Notes under the pieces: model-generated
What the model saw: only the letters and a program-made list of their open reading frames with translations
Database searches by the model: none
What the model was told of the DNA's origin: nothing
Shown: one piece after another, positions 4,140 through 35,203 of the stretch
Layout: each line of letters begins with the position of its first letter
Numbering within the stretch: the stretch's first letter is position 1
Assembly: GCA_001179505.1 (NCBI GenBank)
Contig: CDMY01000077.1
Span: 1-64,000 of the forward strand
Direction: 5' to 3'
Source of the DNA: Vitrella brassicaformis CCMP3155
Lineage: Eukaryota > Protista > Chromerida
DNA: 64,000 bases
Program-made: the position numbers and the translations under genes

Positions 4140-4680
4140 CCTCTAGAGCTGCGGGTGTGCGCACAGAGACATTCATCCGCAGGTGAGCACACACAGACCT
4201 TCATCATATACACACACTCCAAGTCCACGCACGGCGGGGGACATAGAGGCTGATCGGAAGAGACATCATATGACCAACCTGCAAGTCTTTCGATTCGATC
4301 GATCTTTACTATCATCCTCCCTCCCCGCCGAGGCCTTTCGATTCGATCCAGTTTTCCACTATGATGGTAGACAATGGCGGAAAGGCTTGTGAGTGTCGGT
4401 GTAGACTCACTGTAGTATTTCAATGCTCATGTTCATGTTTGGTCGACTTGAGAAATGTGCTCTTAAATCAATATGCGATTGTGAGTCTCCAGACCAACTA
4501 TCAACAAGTCAAACAGACATGCCAAAGAGACATGCAAACATGCAGACCGATGTATTCACGAGCAGCCAGACGTGCAGCAGCCTCTCATCCATCCATCCAT
4601 TCAGTCAGCCAGCCAGCCAATCTACCTAAGACCACACAGGCAGCCAGAGAGGCAGGGAAGCAGACATGGATGTGTGATAT

Positions 4681-7600
4681 CTAGCATTCATCCATCTGCT
4701 GAGGCCCGTCAGTGTTCTCGTTAAAGCCGGTCCAGCCGACTGAGTCTACAATCTCATATTCGGCACACGGCACGAGCGCACACCAAGTGCGGGGCTCGCC
4801 AGTGGTGACTGGCTCATACACCGACCGGTTGTGCTGCCGAGAAAGATCCACCCTGCACGCCAACAAGGATAGCAAGGGCAATCATCGATCGATGGATGAC
4901 TGTGTGTGGCCGTGTTAGTCACCTGCGCACGAGGGCACGGTACTCGACGATCTGGCTGCCCACGGGTGTCCTCTCGTTGGCGATGGCTTGCAGGATCTCC
5001 TTCTCGGAAGGGACCTTCATCGAATGCAGCTGCTCCCATTTGTCGCTGCACCCGCCGCCCTTGGTCTTTTTCCCCTTCCTGGAGAAGGTGGCCAACACCA
5101 AGAGGGACCCCCGCCACTCCCCCGCCCCTCGCCGACCTCACGCAACTAAGCAAAGAAACACACACACACACACACACACACACAAGAAACACACACACAC
5201 ACACACAGGTGAAGGCCAGTGAATACACTCTGCTCGTGTCCCATTTGTGATTCCTGATCTTTTTCATGCATTACGGAACCGCGCATGAAGGCCAGGGTGT
5301 TGTCATACTCAACACCCTGGATGCGCACGAGCGGTCTGGGCTTCCTGGTGGTGCCCGTGGACTCGTACCAGCGATCCTGAAGCGTCTTGGTTCGACGCTC
5401 GGCACCATGGCCACGCAGACGATCTGACAGAAAGGGATATGGACAAGTGTGCATGGAACATCAAGCGATGAATGCCATTCCTCTTCCCTACTTGCGTGCA
5501 GGTCGGTTGCAAACTTGGCTACAAGAGTGACGCACCCATTCGCTATGCTGGAATGGAGGGCGAGTCGTTGGTCGGGCGTGTAAGGGACTTGCTCGGGGTA
5601 CTCGAGGCCGTCGAATGAGGTCTCCAGCACAAAGGCCGGCTCGGGGCTCTGCTGCGTGACCTCCGGCAGCTCGTCAAGGCCCAACGCCTTCTCCAGCGCA
5701 GCGCGGCTCTCAGCGTCCTTGTCAAGGGACACCTATTGGGCAGACCAGAGCACACAGACACGCCGACATGCACATTGATGCATTCGCTTGTTCAGTGTAG
5801 TGGTCACCTGAGGTTTCTTAGCGCCCTTCAACTCTACTTCTGCAGCCTCAGTGGCACGATTCCCCTGCCCTTGCCCCTCTCCCCCGTCCAGTACTATCAC
5901 GTCGGCACTCGAAGACGATGACGCACCTGCGGCAGCTGCAGCCGATGTGGATGACGGCTCGTCCGCCACGCCGAAAAGCTCCTTGAGCCCCAGGTCGTCA
6001 TCCTTGTTAAGCTCGATGATGACGCGAAGATGGCCGTCCTCATCTTCGTCGTCGTCATCGTGCTCGCTGAAACGGCCAGCCTTCTCGAGGAAGCGGCTCA
6101 GCACGGCTGGTGAAGGGAGGGGAGGAGCCGATGAGTCGTCTCGCTCTAACACACACATACAGCAGGCAATACATCGCATCAACAACCGCTGGTACGCACT
6201 ATGAGAGAGAGCTCACCCGTGGACATGTCCAGAAACTTGCAATTCTCCTCTACTTCTGCCTGCAATGCCGCCTGCCTCTCCGCCTTTACCATCTCTAGGC
6301 TCTCCTTTGAGTGCTCTTGACATTCCATGACCTCTCGCGTCTGCACAAGAAGACAAGACATATTGCATCATGACTCAAACACTTCTCTGTCCTGTCTTGT
6401 TTGTATCTGACCGAGTTGAAGAGCGTCCTCATCGTCTCGGACAACGTGACGATGTCCTTGAATCCCTCCTCTCCCATGTGCAGCAACGGATTCTGCACGC
6501 CACCAAAGGCCTGCAACATCCTGCTCACGTGACGCTTCACGATGTCCATGACGGGCAGGGCAGCCTGGGCACACTGCTTGGCGACGCTGACCGGGCTGCT
6601 GAGGTCGGGTGTCATGCCGCCTCCCTTCAGCTCCTACCACGGCTGCTGGTGGAGCATCTTTGACCGCAAGGTGGACTGCTGCTGACTGAGCATCTGTCGA
6701 ATGGCCGCGTGGCGTTTGGTGAAGAGCTTCTCGTTGCCGAAATACGATTTGGTCTTGCCTACATACACACAATGTTCAATCATGAGTGCGCACATGCAGG
6801 TGGCTTCGTGTGGCGTGGTGCATGCACTCACCAGTTGGTATGTTGCCATTGATGGAGCAGTGGAAAAAGATGGACGAGTCTTTCTCGTGCTTGACGAAGT
6901 CATTGACAGTGAACTCGCGCACATCTGGATACACACATGCATATACACCAGCACATACATGTTTGTGTTTGCACGTGGCTTGTGTGCATATGTGCGGCTC
7001 ACTGTGCATGATCGTTCGCAGGTAGCCGAAATTCAACTCCAGTCCCATTGTGGTGGCATGGTCCGTGTTGGTGATGTCCTCGCGGATGATCAGGAACATG
7101 TTGGACATGAGGCACATGACCGTGTTGACGAAGGTGATCTCGTGCAGGCCTTGCACTCGCGTCAAAATGCTGAACGCCACGCCGCACAACATGACACGCA
7201 GTGCCGTGCTAAAGTTCTGCACCACACACATACGAACAAAGTGAGAGAGAGTTTCAGATGGACTGACAACACACCAGATGCAGTGTACATGTACCTTGCG
7301 GGTCATGTACGACATGCACCGCAGCCCCGTGAAGAAGAGCTCGGTGGCGATTACGTCTGCCGAGAAGGACTCTTGGTCTTCGCCGACACGGAGGATCTCC
7401 AGGTTCTCGACGCTGCTGATGATCTCTACCTTGCGGTCGGATGAGAAGTCCCGCAGCTGCCACGTCTCTGCTGGCACACTGGCAGTAGGCAGCAGGCCTG
7501 GATCGATCACGCCGAAACCGATGGTGAGAATACGCGTGCCGCCGAGTGCAGCAGTGCGCAAATTCTGAATACACACAGAGTTTCACATCCAGCATCACAT

Positions 7601-9576
7601 ATTAGTGTGGTGTGTCAATGGTGTTTCTCTCTGAGGTCATAGCGCACCTTCACGCAATGGTGGTTGTCGTTGTTTGTCAGCAAATTGGTCTCTCTGTTGA
7701 GGAAGGCCAGGAAGTTCTCTTTCATCCACCCCATCTCCTTGCCGATATTATTTGTCGCCACGTTAACCTGCATCCACACACGTATCCACACACCGGCACA
7801 CAACACACGTATACAGACACATGCTTCTGTGTCGGTGCGTCTCACGCATGACCACTGACCAGTAAGAAGGCTGCATGCTGCTCGACGACATGCACCAGGT
7901 CCTTGTTGAACTGCAATTCCCCGTCGGCATCTGCCACACCCGGTCGAACCGCCAGGGGGAAGAAACGCGGCCTGTGGCCTCCCACTGTCCCCTCCCGCCC
8001 CTCCCCACACCTACAGTCTGCTCCCCCGTCTCGTGGTTGACCAGCAGGCACACCTTGGCATTCGTTGCCGGCTTCACTTCACCAAGCAGCTGCTTGACAA
8101 AGTCTTGCACTGTTGCCCCCTCTGGAATGGCGATGTTGTGGTCCTCCCTGCCAGGGGTGTAGCAGCCCCCGTACACACGGCCGTACCGCAGGTTAGCCTC
8201 CAACGCTGGCGCCACGATCGTCTCGTCACGGGGAAACGACACACGCGCCGGCTTCTCGGGCGTCGCCCCCACCAATGACGCGTAGTGATCGAGAGAGGTG
8301 GTGATGCCCTGCTGTGTGAGGTCGAGTGGGTTGGGGCGGGTAGGCTGCTTGGCCGTCAGCCGCCGGATGTACCGCTTCGAAATCGGTGCGCCGAGTGCCG
8401 ACCTGATATACAGCAGAAAAGCACAGAAGGTAATGCATTAGTGTTCGTTTTGCTTTCGTGTCGCTCTCTTCTCGTACCTCAAAAGGTCGTATGAGGGATT
8501 GAGCTTCATCATGATGCAAAGATGGATCAGCTCCTGTTGTCTCTTCAGGTGTTGCTGTATCAGTACACCTACCAGCGGACGAATGAGAGGTGTCTGCTGT
8601 ATTTCTCACCTGCGCATCGTAGCTGATTTTGATGCCCAACCGGTTCATATTGCCAACAGCGGCGATCCCGTGTGCGATGTGGCCGTACTGCTTCACGTAT
8701 GCTGGCGCCGTGAGGGAAAACCCATGACAGGGCACGTGGTGCTTCGTCGACCGGCCGTCTGCTAGGGTGAGGGGGGGTGGGATGAGGGGGGGTGGGAGGG
8801 TTGGGTTGCGGGCGCCTGACGTAGATGCGACAGCTGCTGCTGCAGGGACTGAAGGGGCAGGGGCGGCGGCCGACGACGGCTCTTTCCCCTGGACTGCACA
8901 TCAGACACATTGCCGATACATCTAGTTGGTGTCTGATCCGTTGTCTTCTGTTCGTGTACCGGCACTGGCTTTGGCGAAGAAGCTGGTGATCGGCTTGCAG
9001 CCCCTGGGCGGAGGATGTGGTTTGGACGGCAATTGTGTCGGCACCGTCTCTTCGATCCTGGCTTTCTCGTCCTCTCGACTTGGAGATAGCACATCCTCGC
9101 CCGAAGCGCGCCTCTGCTGACGTTCCTGTTGAGCCTGAGAAGGAAAAAGACACAGATAAAGAACCATTCACAGAACCCACTCACGAGCCGCATACCTTCT
9201 CCATCAGCTCGTGGACGCGCTCCTGCCACTCGTGCCATATCTTGTGCTCCGAGTGCTCGTTCTTTTTCGGTGGGCCGAATGGCGGCGGGTGCCTGTCGTT
9301 GAAGTGAAAGATGGCTCCCTTCTTGCTCGTATTGCAGCGCTGGCCGCAATGGCAATCAACCCACTCCCCCCCGTTTACGTCAATGGCCTTTGCCCGCTGC
9401 GCAAACTCCGGTGTGATCACCCGCTTCTCGTAGTCGTAAATCTCCTTGCTCCACGCCCATTGCTTGACTTTGAGGTGTTGGTCATGTGGGGTCATCGCGT
9501 CGAAGTCGTCTGTCGTCAAGGCCTTCTTCCTCTTGCCCGTCTTTGAATGCGTCCCGTGCTTCGCGCCTCCAATCAC
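4681..9576 (-). CDS. Intron-rich DDE transposase-like protein, P-element/THAP9-like (D-x2-H group), about 16 exons
   Basis: Spliced motifs in order: WVDCHCGQRC..HFNDRH; KPITSFF; VSFPRDETIVAPALEANLRYGRVYGG (first D); ATNAK; VNVATNNIGKE; DNHHCVK|NLRTAALGGTRILTIG; LRDFSSDRKVEIISS; TTMGLELNFGYLR (E); REFTVNDF. GT-AG boundaries keep frame at most junctions checked. Stop at 4681; first exon boundary uncertain (first ATG in that exon at 9495). Confidence 0.7.
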
Positions 9577-9699: not shown

Positions 9700-9796
9700 C
9701 GTATTGGCACAGAAGAAGGAGTGGCGCTAAGAGGATGGCAAGGGGAGAACGTATTGGCACAGAAGAAGGAGTGGCGCTAAGAGGATGGCAAGGGGA
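9700..9796 (+). repeat. 50-bp tandem duplication
   Basis: CGTATTGGCACAGAAGAAGGAGTGGCGCTAAGAGGATGGCAAGGGGA appears twice, 50 bp apart. Confidence 0.95.
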
Positions 9797-9861
9797 AAGA
9801 GTAGTACCTCTTAGTAATTGCCCTCTCGTGGACTTGCTCCAGCAAGACGTGGATGAATCCC

Positions 9862-9915: not shown

Positions 9916-10218
9916 ATGCGGGTGTGAAGGCGACGGCAAGCAGAAGCGCATCGACGGTGAAGTACAGAGCCATCATCGACCAGAAGGCAATACAACAGAG
10001 CGTCGACTGCTGTCGCCGTCGTTCGCTTATGAGGGAGGCGAGATATCGCAGGGGCTCCGACACGACCACAGCTGCACACATAAAGATGCTCACATGCGCA
10101 GGTGTGCGCACACAGACATTCATGATATACACGCACTCCAAGTCCACACGTGCATGCGCAGGTGGTGCGCACACAGACATTCATGACACCCCGCCAGACG
10201 CGCCAAGCTCCGTGCACA

Positions 10219-11092
10219 GATCAACGACAGCAATCCCGCCAAAGTGGACGAGATGCTCACACTCGTCAAGCAGCGCATAGAGCAGGCCATCGGTCGTCTG
10301 GGGCTCGAGGAAGTCCTGGTCTTCGACGACGGTGGTCTGGAAGACGGCTTGAAGGCGGTGTATGTGCTGGAGCAGGGCAGTGGTGAGGAATGGCGGGCGA
10401 TGGGGCGGTTCATTCGGCTGGCCGCCATCTATCAGCTCACTCCCAATGCCACTCTGCCTCTGCGGCTGTCGGCTGATGCGCTGCCCACCGCCACAGCCTT
10501 CCACCAGCTGCCGCTCATCCTGGCCCTCTACAAGATCATCGGCCACCTCTTCACCTACAAGAGGACCAGCCTGCAGCTGCAGCAAGCCAGCAACGATGCC
10601 TATCGGATCGGCAATGTGTCGTTTCGTGTGCTGCAGGAGGGTGACATGCTCGCCGGCCATCCCTATCGCCGCGGCTACCAGACAAGCGCTCCTGCTATCC
10701 GCCGTGATGTCTGGCTTTCCCCCTTCTTCTCGTCATTCCTGGTGCGCACGATGCTCGTGTCGTGGTGGCCGGAAGAGGGGGTGGACAACAGGAGGGTGCT
10801 GACAGCAAACATCGGCCGTGATGCCAACCGCCGTGGCCGTCTGATGAGAGAGGTCATTAGCGAGCGGCAGGGGGGCATCACTGTGGACGACCGCTGGGAC
10901 GAAGGCAATATGAATCATGCCAACCCTGTCGACTTTCGTCGTGTGATTGTGAGTGGCTTCCGGCCCGGTGAGAGGGTCGCTGCCTATCTGTATGTAGGCG
11001 TGGGCTTCATCAACCTGCGCATGACCGAGGCACGTGTTGGCCATCGGTCTCAGCGGCTCGCCAACCGCTTCCCGCAGTCGATGCCCTCCTGA
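10219..11092 (+). CDS. Hypothetical protein, last exon (lineage-specific family)
   Basis: Open, GC3-rich reading frame of about 290 aa after acceptor CACAG|ATC (INDSNPAKVDEMLTLVKQ...FPQSMPS*). No recognisable domain; upstream exons unresolved. Confidence 0.7.
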
Positions 11093-11529
11093 TGTGCCAT
11101 GCTGAGCCACTTCGAGCTCGAGAACGACGTCATCAACAGAGGGAGGGTGGTGGGATGAGGCAGGAGGGACAGATATGTGTGTGTGTGTATGTGTGTGGTG
11201 GAGGGGGGCTGACCGTCTTGATTGGGTAAAGTGGCTGATCGCATTCATGAAATGGAATGGATGGATGTCGTCTTTTCTTTTATATGCATACATGAATGCA
11301 TGAATGTCCAAAGTCGCGGATGCATTCATGGTGTGCGTGACTGTCTGGCTGTCCGTGCATTCAATGAGTCTGTCCGGTCGCATGAATGCAGAACAGAGCT
11401 GGTGGACTCGAGTGGTGCCGTTCACATATATATACATTTATCTCTCAACACACGTATGCATTGTATCGGTCTCCCCATTCCGACATGGCGCATCTCACAG
11501 CAGCCACCACACACATGCCCTCTGCCCAT

Positions 11530-34309: not shown

Positions 34310-34455
34310 CTGAAGGAAGGGGGGATGAACCAACCAACCAACCAACCAGCCAAGGACATATATGCTGAACGAACGGGTGGCTGATGCGATGCGCAGCGCA
34401 TGTGTGTGAGTGTGACGTGATTGATAGGTAGGTACTACGTGGCCTGGCTTGCGTC

Positions 34456-34914
34456 CACCCCATGGAAGGCTCCTCCCTTGTATTTGAAATTTTTTAAAAT
34501 TACTCCTTCGATTTTTTGAGGGGTTTGGGAGGTTTTAAAATGTAGATGGCTGGTTTGGAGGTGGCGAAGTGAAGAGGGTTTAAACGGGTTTTCAATGGCT
34601 AAAACAAGCCTCAAAAGCCTCAAAATAGCATTTCCTGCCCCCCCCCCCCCCCAAGGCCGGGACGAGAAGGATCGATCTGCACAAACCACACCGCATACAC
34701 ATATGCCATGAGTGCCCACTGTCAGGGTTCGAACTCCAGTTAGCGCCGTTAGTGGGGCTCGCGGTCAAGCTGGAAATAAAATTTCTCCTCGATTTTTTAT
34801 TTATTTGCGTTGTTTTAAATATTTTCCGCCTATTTGACGGTTTTTACATATTTTTCGGCACATTTGGGACGTTTTAAAAGTTGCCCGATCAAGGGAGGAG
34901 GCTTCCACGGGGTG
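34456..34914. mobile_element. MITE (non-autonomous DNA transposon), 459 bp, 25-bp TIRs, 8-bp TSD
   Basis: Left TIR CACCCCATGGAAGGCTCCTCCCTTG (34456-34480). Right TIR 34890-34914 reverse-complements to CACCCCGTGGAAGCCTCCTCCCTTG (23/25). Flanks CTTGCGTC and CCTGCGTC (7/8). AT-rich non-coding interior. Confidence 0.9.
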
Positions 34915-35203
34915 CCTGCGTCACGTACGTGGGTCGTCTCGCCGACGACCTGGGAGGTGCCACGCTGTGCCGCGAGAATGGCGCCGCCCATCGCCTCGTC
35001 CCGCTGAACCTGACAATAGAGAGATTAATCCATTCATTCATCGATGGATGCATCGATGGATGAATGAGTCCTTGTTGTGTGCTTTCATTAAGCTTGGCCC
35101 TGTTTGGCGTGCCCAAACCCCCCGACCTTGACCTCAGGTCTGCATAAAAGGTAGACACATCACACAGACACACACACACATATACAAACACAGGATTCAT
35201 TCA

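Follow-up and report, generated by a model that had tools for sequence, protein, structure and literature searches.

Does the interval 4681–9576 of Vitrella brassicaformis CCMP3155 contig CDMY01000077.1 hold a host gene or the transposase gene of a transposon, and could its product still cut DNA? The interval lies in the first 64,000 nucleotides of the contig, the stretch analyzed here (the window); it contains no long open reading frame (ORF), and its minus strand carries a chain of open segments. A preliminary description had read this chain as a P element/THAP9-like transposase gene that lacks one catalytic acid and terminal inverted repeats (TIRs), and had proposed either domestication or an undescribed P-like lineage. 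We favor the view that the locus encodes the transposase of a P-related transposon and that the window copy is disabled, probably immobile, and the last full-length one. The element would be a low-copy cut-and-paste DNA transposon of V. brassicaformis, with a transposase from a divergent P-related lineage that is invisible to Pfam, with 18-bp inverted repeats at its ends and with target-site duplications (TSDs) of 8 bp, as on a deleted sister copy on contig C236. From the N-terminus, the protein is predicted to consist of a C..C...H...H finger, a box that resembles a PIP motif, a helical region for DNA binding, an RNase H-like domain of the D-D-E type and a helical C-terminus, where the RNase H-like domain would carry a D(2)H motif and be split by an all-helical insertion domain.

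Gene, family and active site

Listing of all GT/GC...AG pairs in each gap between coding cores, with the frame kept and free of stops, yielded a minus-strand gene that runs from an ATG at 9495 to a stop at 4684 and comprises 18 exons (3387 nt, 1128 codons, zero in-frame stops). A canonical GT-AG option that preserves the frame exists at 17 of the 17 junctions, with good donors and acceptors and introns of 39–198 nt. The multi-exon gene proposed in the preliminary description is therefore upheld by an intact spliced frame, while its count of about 16 exons has to be raised to 18. The model is a reading of the genomic sequence, and its least certain junctions are 8960|8761, 6638|6598 and 5275|5116; the second of these is a 39–45-nt intron that takes out an in-frame TAG.

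Exhaustive searching by phmmer with the longest open segment (6779–7576) recovered 22 proteins, namely one paralogue fragment and 21 distant relatives with 28–39% identity, and a word search with the core of the homologue P0020 added 27 further homologues. Named sources are the diatom Ditylum brightwellii, a transcriptome labelled Siedleckia nematoides (a blastogregarine) and marine metagenomes from ENA/JGI. Profiles built from the distant homologues alone match the window exons in order, with E values of 7e-30 for exons 8–9 and 3.3e-10 for exon 5, and with weaker but still in-order matches to exons 6, 7, 10, 12 and 16. A six-frame profile search of the whole genome (72,700,666 bases on 1064 contigs) returned the exons 8–9 block at 1.2e-25 and the exon 5 block at 4.8e-6, and matched no family member beyond the window gene and the C236 paralogue; the window copy is the sole full-length member in the assembly. 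An alignment-based search (8 rows) for related loci found six short metagenome loci. One of these, L017 (contig Ga0209712_10021903, marine, 4.3 kb), has a family ORF between 20-nt inverted repeats at 37–56 and 4249–4268, of which 15 nt are perfect; they lie near both contig ends and could be TIRs, with no clean target duplication readable.

None of these proteins is recognized by standard models. An exon-by-exon Pfam scan of the window (E <= 1) gave zero matches, including to PF21787, PF21788, PF21789, PF12017 and the THAP domain PF05485, and scans of 10 and then 31 homologues returned noise alone, the best P-type hit being PF12017 with E 0.19 in one member. The P-type models also failed to match the six-frame genome, but the controls were silent too and this search is hence uninformative. 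Among PDB sequences, phmmer with exon pieces found nothing relevant and a family-profile search did not recover 6P5A. The earlier suggestion of a P-like lineage is supported, and Pfam recognizes neither the window exons nor their relatives. In the published Vitrella survey, class II elements amount to only 0.17 Mb and none is named as P type (PMC4501334, supplement).

The catalytic residues lie in exons 5, 7 and 9. Exon 5 (8011–8402; profile positions 140–259) starts the RNase H-like domain and contains the first Asp (GAC, 8227–8225) in the sequence RDET, so that family residue D192 is retained. Exon 7 (7648–7767; profile positions 304–343) carries the strand VATNNIGKE, in which the second catalytic position reads AAT AAT (Asn-Asn, 7752–7747), followed by the D-x2-H motif with D at 7668–7666, H at 7659–7657 and K at 7650–7648, which continues as NLRT over the junction 7648|7564. 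Exons 8 and 9 jointly match profile positions 344–503. Exon 8 (7295–7564) encodes the first half of the insertion domain and retains the family invariants G368, D373, D388, D392, V395 and R429; exon 9 (7003–7216) encodes the second half and, in GLELNFGYLR, the helix that bears the catalytic Glu (GAG, 7039–7037). Exon 9 is 80% identical to the C236 copy with a ratio of nonsynonymous to synonymous substitution rates (dN/dS) of 0.17. All four motifs had been placed correctly in the preliminary description. D-x2-H-x2-K-x2-R and E-x2-F-x2-[IL]-R match what we take to be the P signature.

Comparison with the family confirmed the loss of the second Asp. D317 and G318 (Asp-Gly) are invariant in 31 relatives and replaced by Asn-Asn in the window, and no alternative exon with Asp-Gly was found in any frame. 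D345, H348 and K351, also invariant in the 31 relatives, are all kept, as is the Glu (E499). In total, 11 of the 14 invariant columns are kept, mostly in the insertion domain, and L398 is changed to Ile. Near-invariant neighbors in the active site are altered as well (S320G, N347H, E496M and H500L), so that the substitutions cluster round the metal site, in contrast to the very well preserved insertion domain; the profile score of exon 7 lies far below that of exons 8–9. E496M and H500L are common to the C236 copy, which indicates that these changes are old and predate the duplication. If an ancestral GAT GGT is assumed, AAT AAT would represent three G-to-A transitions within six bases.

An AlphaFold2 model of P0020 was obtained from a 31-row alignment with a mean predicted local distance difference test score (pLDDT) of 81.9 and a predicted template modeling score (pTM) of 0.75. 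Foldseek against the PDB placed the Drosophila P element transposase (6p5a/6pe2) on top with E 2e-9, followed by Transib, RAG1 and Hermes at 1e-3 or worse. VIA-align of the model with 6p5a_A gave Z 19.9 and a root-mean-square deviation of 3.6 over 385 aligned residues (model 77–534, chain 128–569), compared with Z of about 10 for RAG1/Transib and 7.2–7.4 for Hermes. The match includes the helical DNA-binding region as well as the RNase H core with the insertion domain; the all-helical insertion domain of the model superposes at the fold level on its GTP-binding counterpart in P transposase. D192, D317 and E499, invariant or nearly so in the family, lie on the corresponding structural elements in the model. 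P-type Pfam domains occur in all ten of the nearest named ESM Atlas clusters, at scores that serve as leads only. The predicted family fold is thus closest by far to the Drosophila P element transposase and shares its D...D...D(2)H...E order, which had been proposed for the window gene, and its insertion domain.

The N-terminus departs from this likeness. Exon 1 (9196–9495, an open frame) starts with the ATG at 9495–9493 and encodes a conserved Trp and a zinc-finger-like C-x-C ... H ... H cluster, which aligns with the C-x(1-2)-C ... H-x(4-6)-H pattern of the relatives; it matches the N-termini of P0009, P0014, P0038 and P0040–42, and its ATG and sequence are common to the C236 and C593 copies. 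The THAP domain (PF05485) is absent from the window exons and the 31 relatives at E <= 1, and the label THAP9-like is not supported in the sense of a THAP-bearing protein; this finger stands in its place. Exon 2 (8960–9134, junction 9196|9134) encodes a basic/acidic linker and the PIP-like box C-K-P-I-T-S-F-F. Both the Cys/His cluster and KPITSFF had been noticed before and are found in these two exons. The box sits where P0009 (residues 84–91), P0014 (70–77), P0042 (88–95) and P0041 (174–181) carry canonical PIP boxes (Q-x-x-[ILM]-x-x-[FY]-[FY]), which follow the N-terminal finger in long family members; in the window and C236 copies, Cys replaces the Gln. The recurrent PIP box suggests that the lineage is coupled to the replication clamp.

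Ends, related copies and introns

The inverted-repeat search around the gene returned microsatellites alone, and (CA)n-like runs are the source of most spurious inverted repeats there; the terminus emerged via the paralogue. Homology between the window and C236 stops at the 18-mer ACGGCGGGGGACATAGAG at 4231–4248, 436 bp beyond the stop codon, which represents the 3' TIR (plus strand; it begins ACGGCGGGGG when read inward). It is identical in 18 of 18 positions at C236 (both ends, inverted), C593, C377, C574, C538 and C1000, and the DNA outside it is unrelated at each site, giving a sharp boundary at no fewer than eight places. The preliminary description erred in reporting no TIRs; this terminus lies just outside the interval it considered, and a search of paralogue flanks gave both TIR and TSD on C236. 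The 8 bases outside the window terminus (GTCCACGC, 4223–4230) are the expected half of a TSD, for which no partner was found.

The C236 paralogue aligns collinearly with window positions 9497 to 4230; missing from it are exons 3–7, most of exon 8, exon 10 and exons 12–16. It forms an element of 2891 bp (L004 6869–9759; G000:C236:25868–28758) with perfect 18-bp TIRs and an 8-bp TSD, GTCGACAC. Frameshifts in exons 1 and 18 and a stop in exon 1 break its reading frame, and the C236-type copy is transcribed, as seen from the spliced transcript-derived proteins P0001 (MMETSP) and P0061. Copies of this type are 94–99% identical among themselves at different sites with different flanks, and 68–77% identical to the window copy. 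The 5' end on C593 and the 3' end on C377 both abut the flank GCCATCCC in copies of a very abundant 1-kb repeat. In the window, the 3' untranslated/subterminal region (4249–4683, minus strand) has 71% identity to the corresponding end of the C236 element, and its first ~140 nt are 81–86% identical to the ends on C377, C574, C538, C407 and C1000. The 18-mer is thus the same between lineages in which the adjacent DNA is just 71% identical, and also in a third lineage, C1000, which argues that the ends were under functional constraint.

No 5' terminus was found across the 64-kb window with up to 2 mismatches in 14, nor could homology to the 5' subterminal region of C236 be found for the window copy. 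A look-alike of the terminus at 10017–10001 was considered as a decayed 5' end and is too weak to claim.

The preliminary description had taken intron richness, together with missing TIRs, as a sign of domestication. The C236 copy has GT-AG introns at homologous positions; P0061, which derives from a C236-type transcript, reads over the homologous exon 1|2 junction, and the homologous 8|9 junction is spliced in P0001 and P0061. Introns within a copy bounded by TIRs and a TSD, together with spliced transcripts, indicate that the introns travel with the element. Because they belong to the mobile element, they are no evidence of domestication, and the window copy has a perfect 3' terminus; the argument is thus not supported. 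V. brassicaformis genes have a median of 6 introns (PMC4501334, supplement).

Several known systems can be compared with the Vitrella element. The Drosophila melanogaster P transposase (6P5A/6PE2) and the family have in common one Asp each on strands 1 and 4, a D(2)H motif behind strand 5 and a Glu on the helix that follows the insertion; for the P superfamily, the position of D(2)H is directly behind strand 5 and downstream of the second Asp (PMC8230255). The Drosophila P element likewise has an 8-bp target duplication, TIRs and internally deleted non-autonomous copies. In contrast, sequence identity is about 13–15% and escapes both Pfam P-type models and PDB profile search, the THAP domain is replaced by the C..C...H...H finger and PIP(-like) box, and the spacing is D-124-D-27-D(2)H-150-E in P0020 and D-72-D-35-D(2)H-188-E in Drosophila P. 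The Vitrella element has 18-bp TIRs and 17 introns where Drosophila P has 31-bp TIRs and 3 introns, and the window copy has Asn for the second Asp. The divergent P element of Drosophila buzzatii with its miniature inverted-repeat transposable element (MITE) BuT5 (PMC3698922) likewise has extra introns relative to canonical P (6 confirmed), TSDs of 8–9 bp and short non-autonomous partners that have only the ends in common; that element is from an insect, bears a THAP domain and is recognizable by sequence, whereas the Vitrella element, with 17 introns, is recognizable by structure and motifs only. Human THAP9 and other P-derived host genes resemble the window gene as single-copy, intron-containing genes with a P-type catalytic domain, and exemplify one way for such a copy to become a host gene. 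However, THAP9 still cuts DNA, with D304/D374/E613 retained (PMC8230255), and it bears a THAP domain but no flanking transposon ends, whereas the window gene lacks the second Asp and THAP and keeps one terminus.

Classification and state of the window copy

Asn-Asn at the second catalytic position and the absence of a recognizable 5' terminus make it most likely that the window copy can neither cut DNA nor move. It could be recently disabled, or could survive as a non-catalytic protein that binds the element ends. The analysis shows the structure of the gene, its family membership, the modelled fold of a homologue, the loss of the Asp and the TIRs and TSD of the family; that the copy is catalytically dead and immobile, and that it might still bind DNA, is inferred. 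Several observations weigh against the interpretation favored here, some bearing on the assignment to P and others on the fate of this copy. As regards the former, sequence profiles alone, both Pfam P models and PDB profile search, give no link to P, and the fold evidence comes from P0020, a homologue with about 30% identity to the window protein. The clade could instead be another C/DxxH superfamily that has no solved structure (Kolobok1-like, Dada or MuDR-like), with P as the best match because it is the sole solved relative. The empty profile searches and the absent THAP domain would fit this, as would the fact that C/DxxH is common to five superfamilies (PMC9587614). We nevertheless regard it as improbable, since the P match extends over helical region, RNase H core and insertion domain (385 residues, Z 19.9) and the ESM neighbors have P domains. 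Kolobok has a TTAA target duplication and, in nearly all lineages, a zinc finger between C/DxxH and Glu (PMC9587614), whereas the Vitrella TSD is 8 bp long and differs from TTAA, and the family sequences have no Cys/His cluster between D(2)H and Glu; in the P superfamily, target duplications are 7–9 bp and typically 8 bp, which is a P hallmark (PMC3698922). The 8-bp TSD does not set P apart from hAT elements such as Hermes, which also have C/DxxH and an insertion domain made up of helices, and in many cases a BED-type finger at the N-terminus, but Hermes reached Z 7.2–7.4 against 19.9 for P, and no hAT Pfam domain occurs in the 31 relatives.

As regards the fate of the copy, that Asp-to-Asn abolishes activity is an assumption, and D-to-N substitutions were avoided as possibly uninformative in PMC8230255. 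The intact frame over 18 exons and a dN/dS of 0.30 against the C236 copy (348 codons, bootstrap 0.22–0.42) fit a gene under selection rather than a relic. The gene could be a domesticated or regulatory derivative, a selected, non-catalytic factor that binds DNA. It would be a host gene or else, like the truncated P repressors, a repressor encoded by the transposon, and would still bind the 18-bp ends via finger, helical region and insertion domain. Domestication is possible and not the best reading, and we give this alternative, the main rival of the favored view, a clearly minor share. The unbroken 1128 codons and the dN/dS, which falls to 0.17 in exon 9, speak for it, as does the concentration of losses (D317N, G318N, S320G, N347H, E496M and H500L) at the active site while 11 of 14 invariants and the scores of exons 8–9 relative to exon 7 hold up; E496M and H500L are older than the duplication, yet conserved since. 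The gene is also single-copy with no 5' terminus found, and P transposases have been domesticated repeatedly (PMC3698922). On the other side, the copy retains a perfect 3' terminus, intron richness is uninformative here because it is a property of the mobile element, a dN/dS of 0.30 is not assignable to the window branch and values below 1 are expected between active transposon lineages too, and the collections searched hold no protein that covers window exons 8–9 (any length) or exon 5 (proteins of 72–227 aa). A copy that still works is very unlikely in our estimate, whether the window copy itself or a near-identical unassembled one: Asn would be tolerated, or AAT AAT would not be the functional allele, and this autonomous transposase would drive the spread of the deleted copies. 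Sister copies that are 94–99% identical at different sites with different flanks imply recent mobilization and hence a working transposase; the window and deleted copies have the same termini, and the assembly holds no other full-length gene. Asp-Gly is invariant in 31 relatives, however, further near-invariant active-site neighbors are altered, the 5' terminus is missing, and at 68–77% identity the window copy is not the immediate parent of the deleted copies. The Illumina assembly breaks inside copies (C377, C538), and those on C593 and C1033 are likewise cut off at contig ends, so that an Asp-bearing copy could be unassembled, which would be the simplest answer to how deleted copies spread without a visible working transposase.

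We thus retain the reading of the window copy as a disabled, P-related transposase gene. A more far-reaching proposal, which we put forward tentatively and consider rather unlikely as a whole, is that a Pfam-invisible P-related clade is distributed among marine protists, with members in a diatom, in a blastogregarine transcriptome, in plankton metagenomes and in a chromerid, that many of these have a canonical, PCNA-binding PIP box behind the N-terminal finger, and that its last full-length Vitrella member is a selected D-N-E protein, a non-catalytic binder of the 18-bp ends acting as repressor or new host factor, while deleted relatives are still transcribed and spliced.

With the assignment to P, the superfamily would extend to alveolates and stramenopiles via a lineage missed by current sequence models, and transposon annotation of these genomes would therefore under-count it. 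The clade gains a worked example with defined ends, a target duplication size and deletion derivatives, and an example of a DNA transposon in which 17 spliceosomal introns of the transposase gene move along with the element. The window copy would also provide a clean test case for the border between a dying and a domesticated transposon copy.

Remaining exons and neighboring repeats

The other exons, all on the minus strand, complete the gene. Exon 3 (8610–8761) encodes a helical, pre-catalytic region in an open frame with frame-preserving GT-AG options; its acceptor is 8761 or 8758, and this boundary is less certain. Exon 4 (8478–8554; junctions 8610|8554 and 8478|8402) contributes a helix-turn-helix-like region at family positions 105–131, and exon 6 (7860–7930; junctions 8011|7930 and 7860|7767) has a weak in-order profile match at 262–291. 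After the catalytic Glu, exon 10 (6832–6924; profile positions 504–516) carries the conserved R-E-F-T-V motif and retains R510, E511, F512 and T513. Exon 11 (6638–6758) begins with a start conserved in C236 and ends directly before the in-frame TAG, where the options are 6638 or 6641 joined to 6598 or 6595, its end being the least certain junction of all.

Exon 12 (6412–6598) belongs to the C-terminal helical region, has a weak in-order profile match at 569–634 and retains F630. It is followed by exon 13 (6217–6340; open frame, junctions 6412|6340 and 6217|6145), exon 14 (5808–6145), an acidic, low-complexity linker, and exon 15 (5492–5732), the last two placed by open frame and junctions. Exon 16 (5275–5423) matches profile positions 749–795 in order (E 0.0085), with the conserved C-terminal motif K-T-L-Q-D-R-W-Y and the conserved G, L, R and R retained. 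Intron 16 contains a (CA)n microsatellite at 5150–5210. Exon 17 (4923–5116, acceptor 5116 uncertain) is 73% identical to C236 with a dN/dS of 0.39, and exon 18 (4684–4852), with the stop codon at 4686–4684, is conserved in C236, where the frameshift sits at that point.

Several repeats surround the gene. A ~46-nt unit is tandemly duplicated at 9700–9800, in the presumed 5' untranslated or promoter region. A 55-nt direct repeat (4174–4228 and 10093–10147, 89% identical) flanks the gene; it is part of a short local repeat unit, and the 3' end of the element is inserted in one copy of that unit. Just upstream of the gene, the ~1-kb sequence at 10188–11154 is highly repeated (126 candidates, of which 40 were scored, with 69–80% identity) and has a 282-codon plus-strand ORF with no Pfam match. 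The element ends on C593 and C377 are inserted at the same point of this repeat, GCCATCCC, which corresponds to about 10656–10663 of the window. An assembly gap (N run) at 1074–1372 accounts for an apparent block of low GC. A MITE at 34448–34922 was considered as a partner of the element and rejected, as its termini are unrelated to the 18-mer; the MITE itself is real, with inverted termini of ~25 bp that start with CACCCC and the flanking 8-mers CTTGCGTC and CCTGCGTC.

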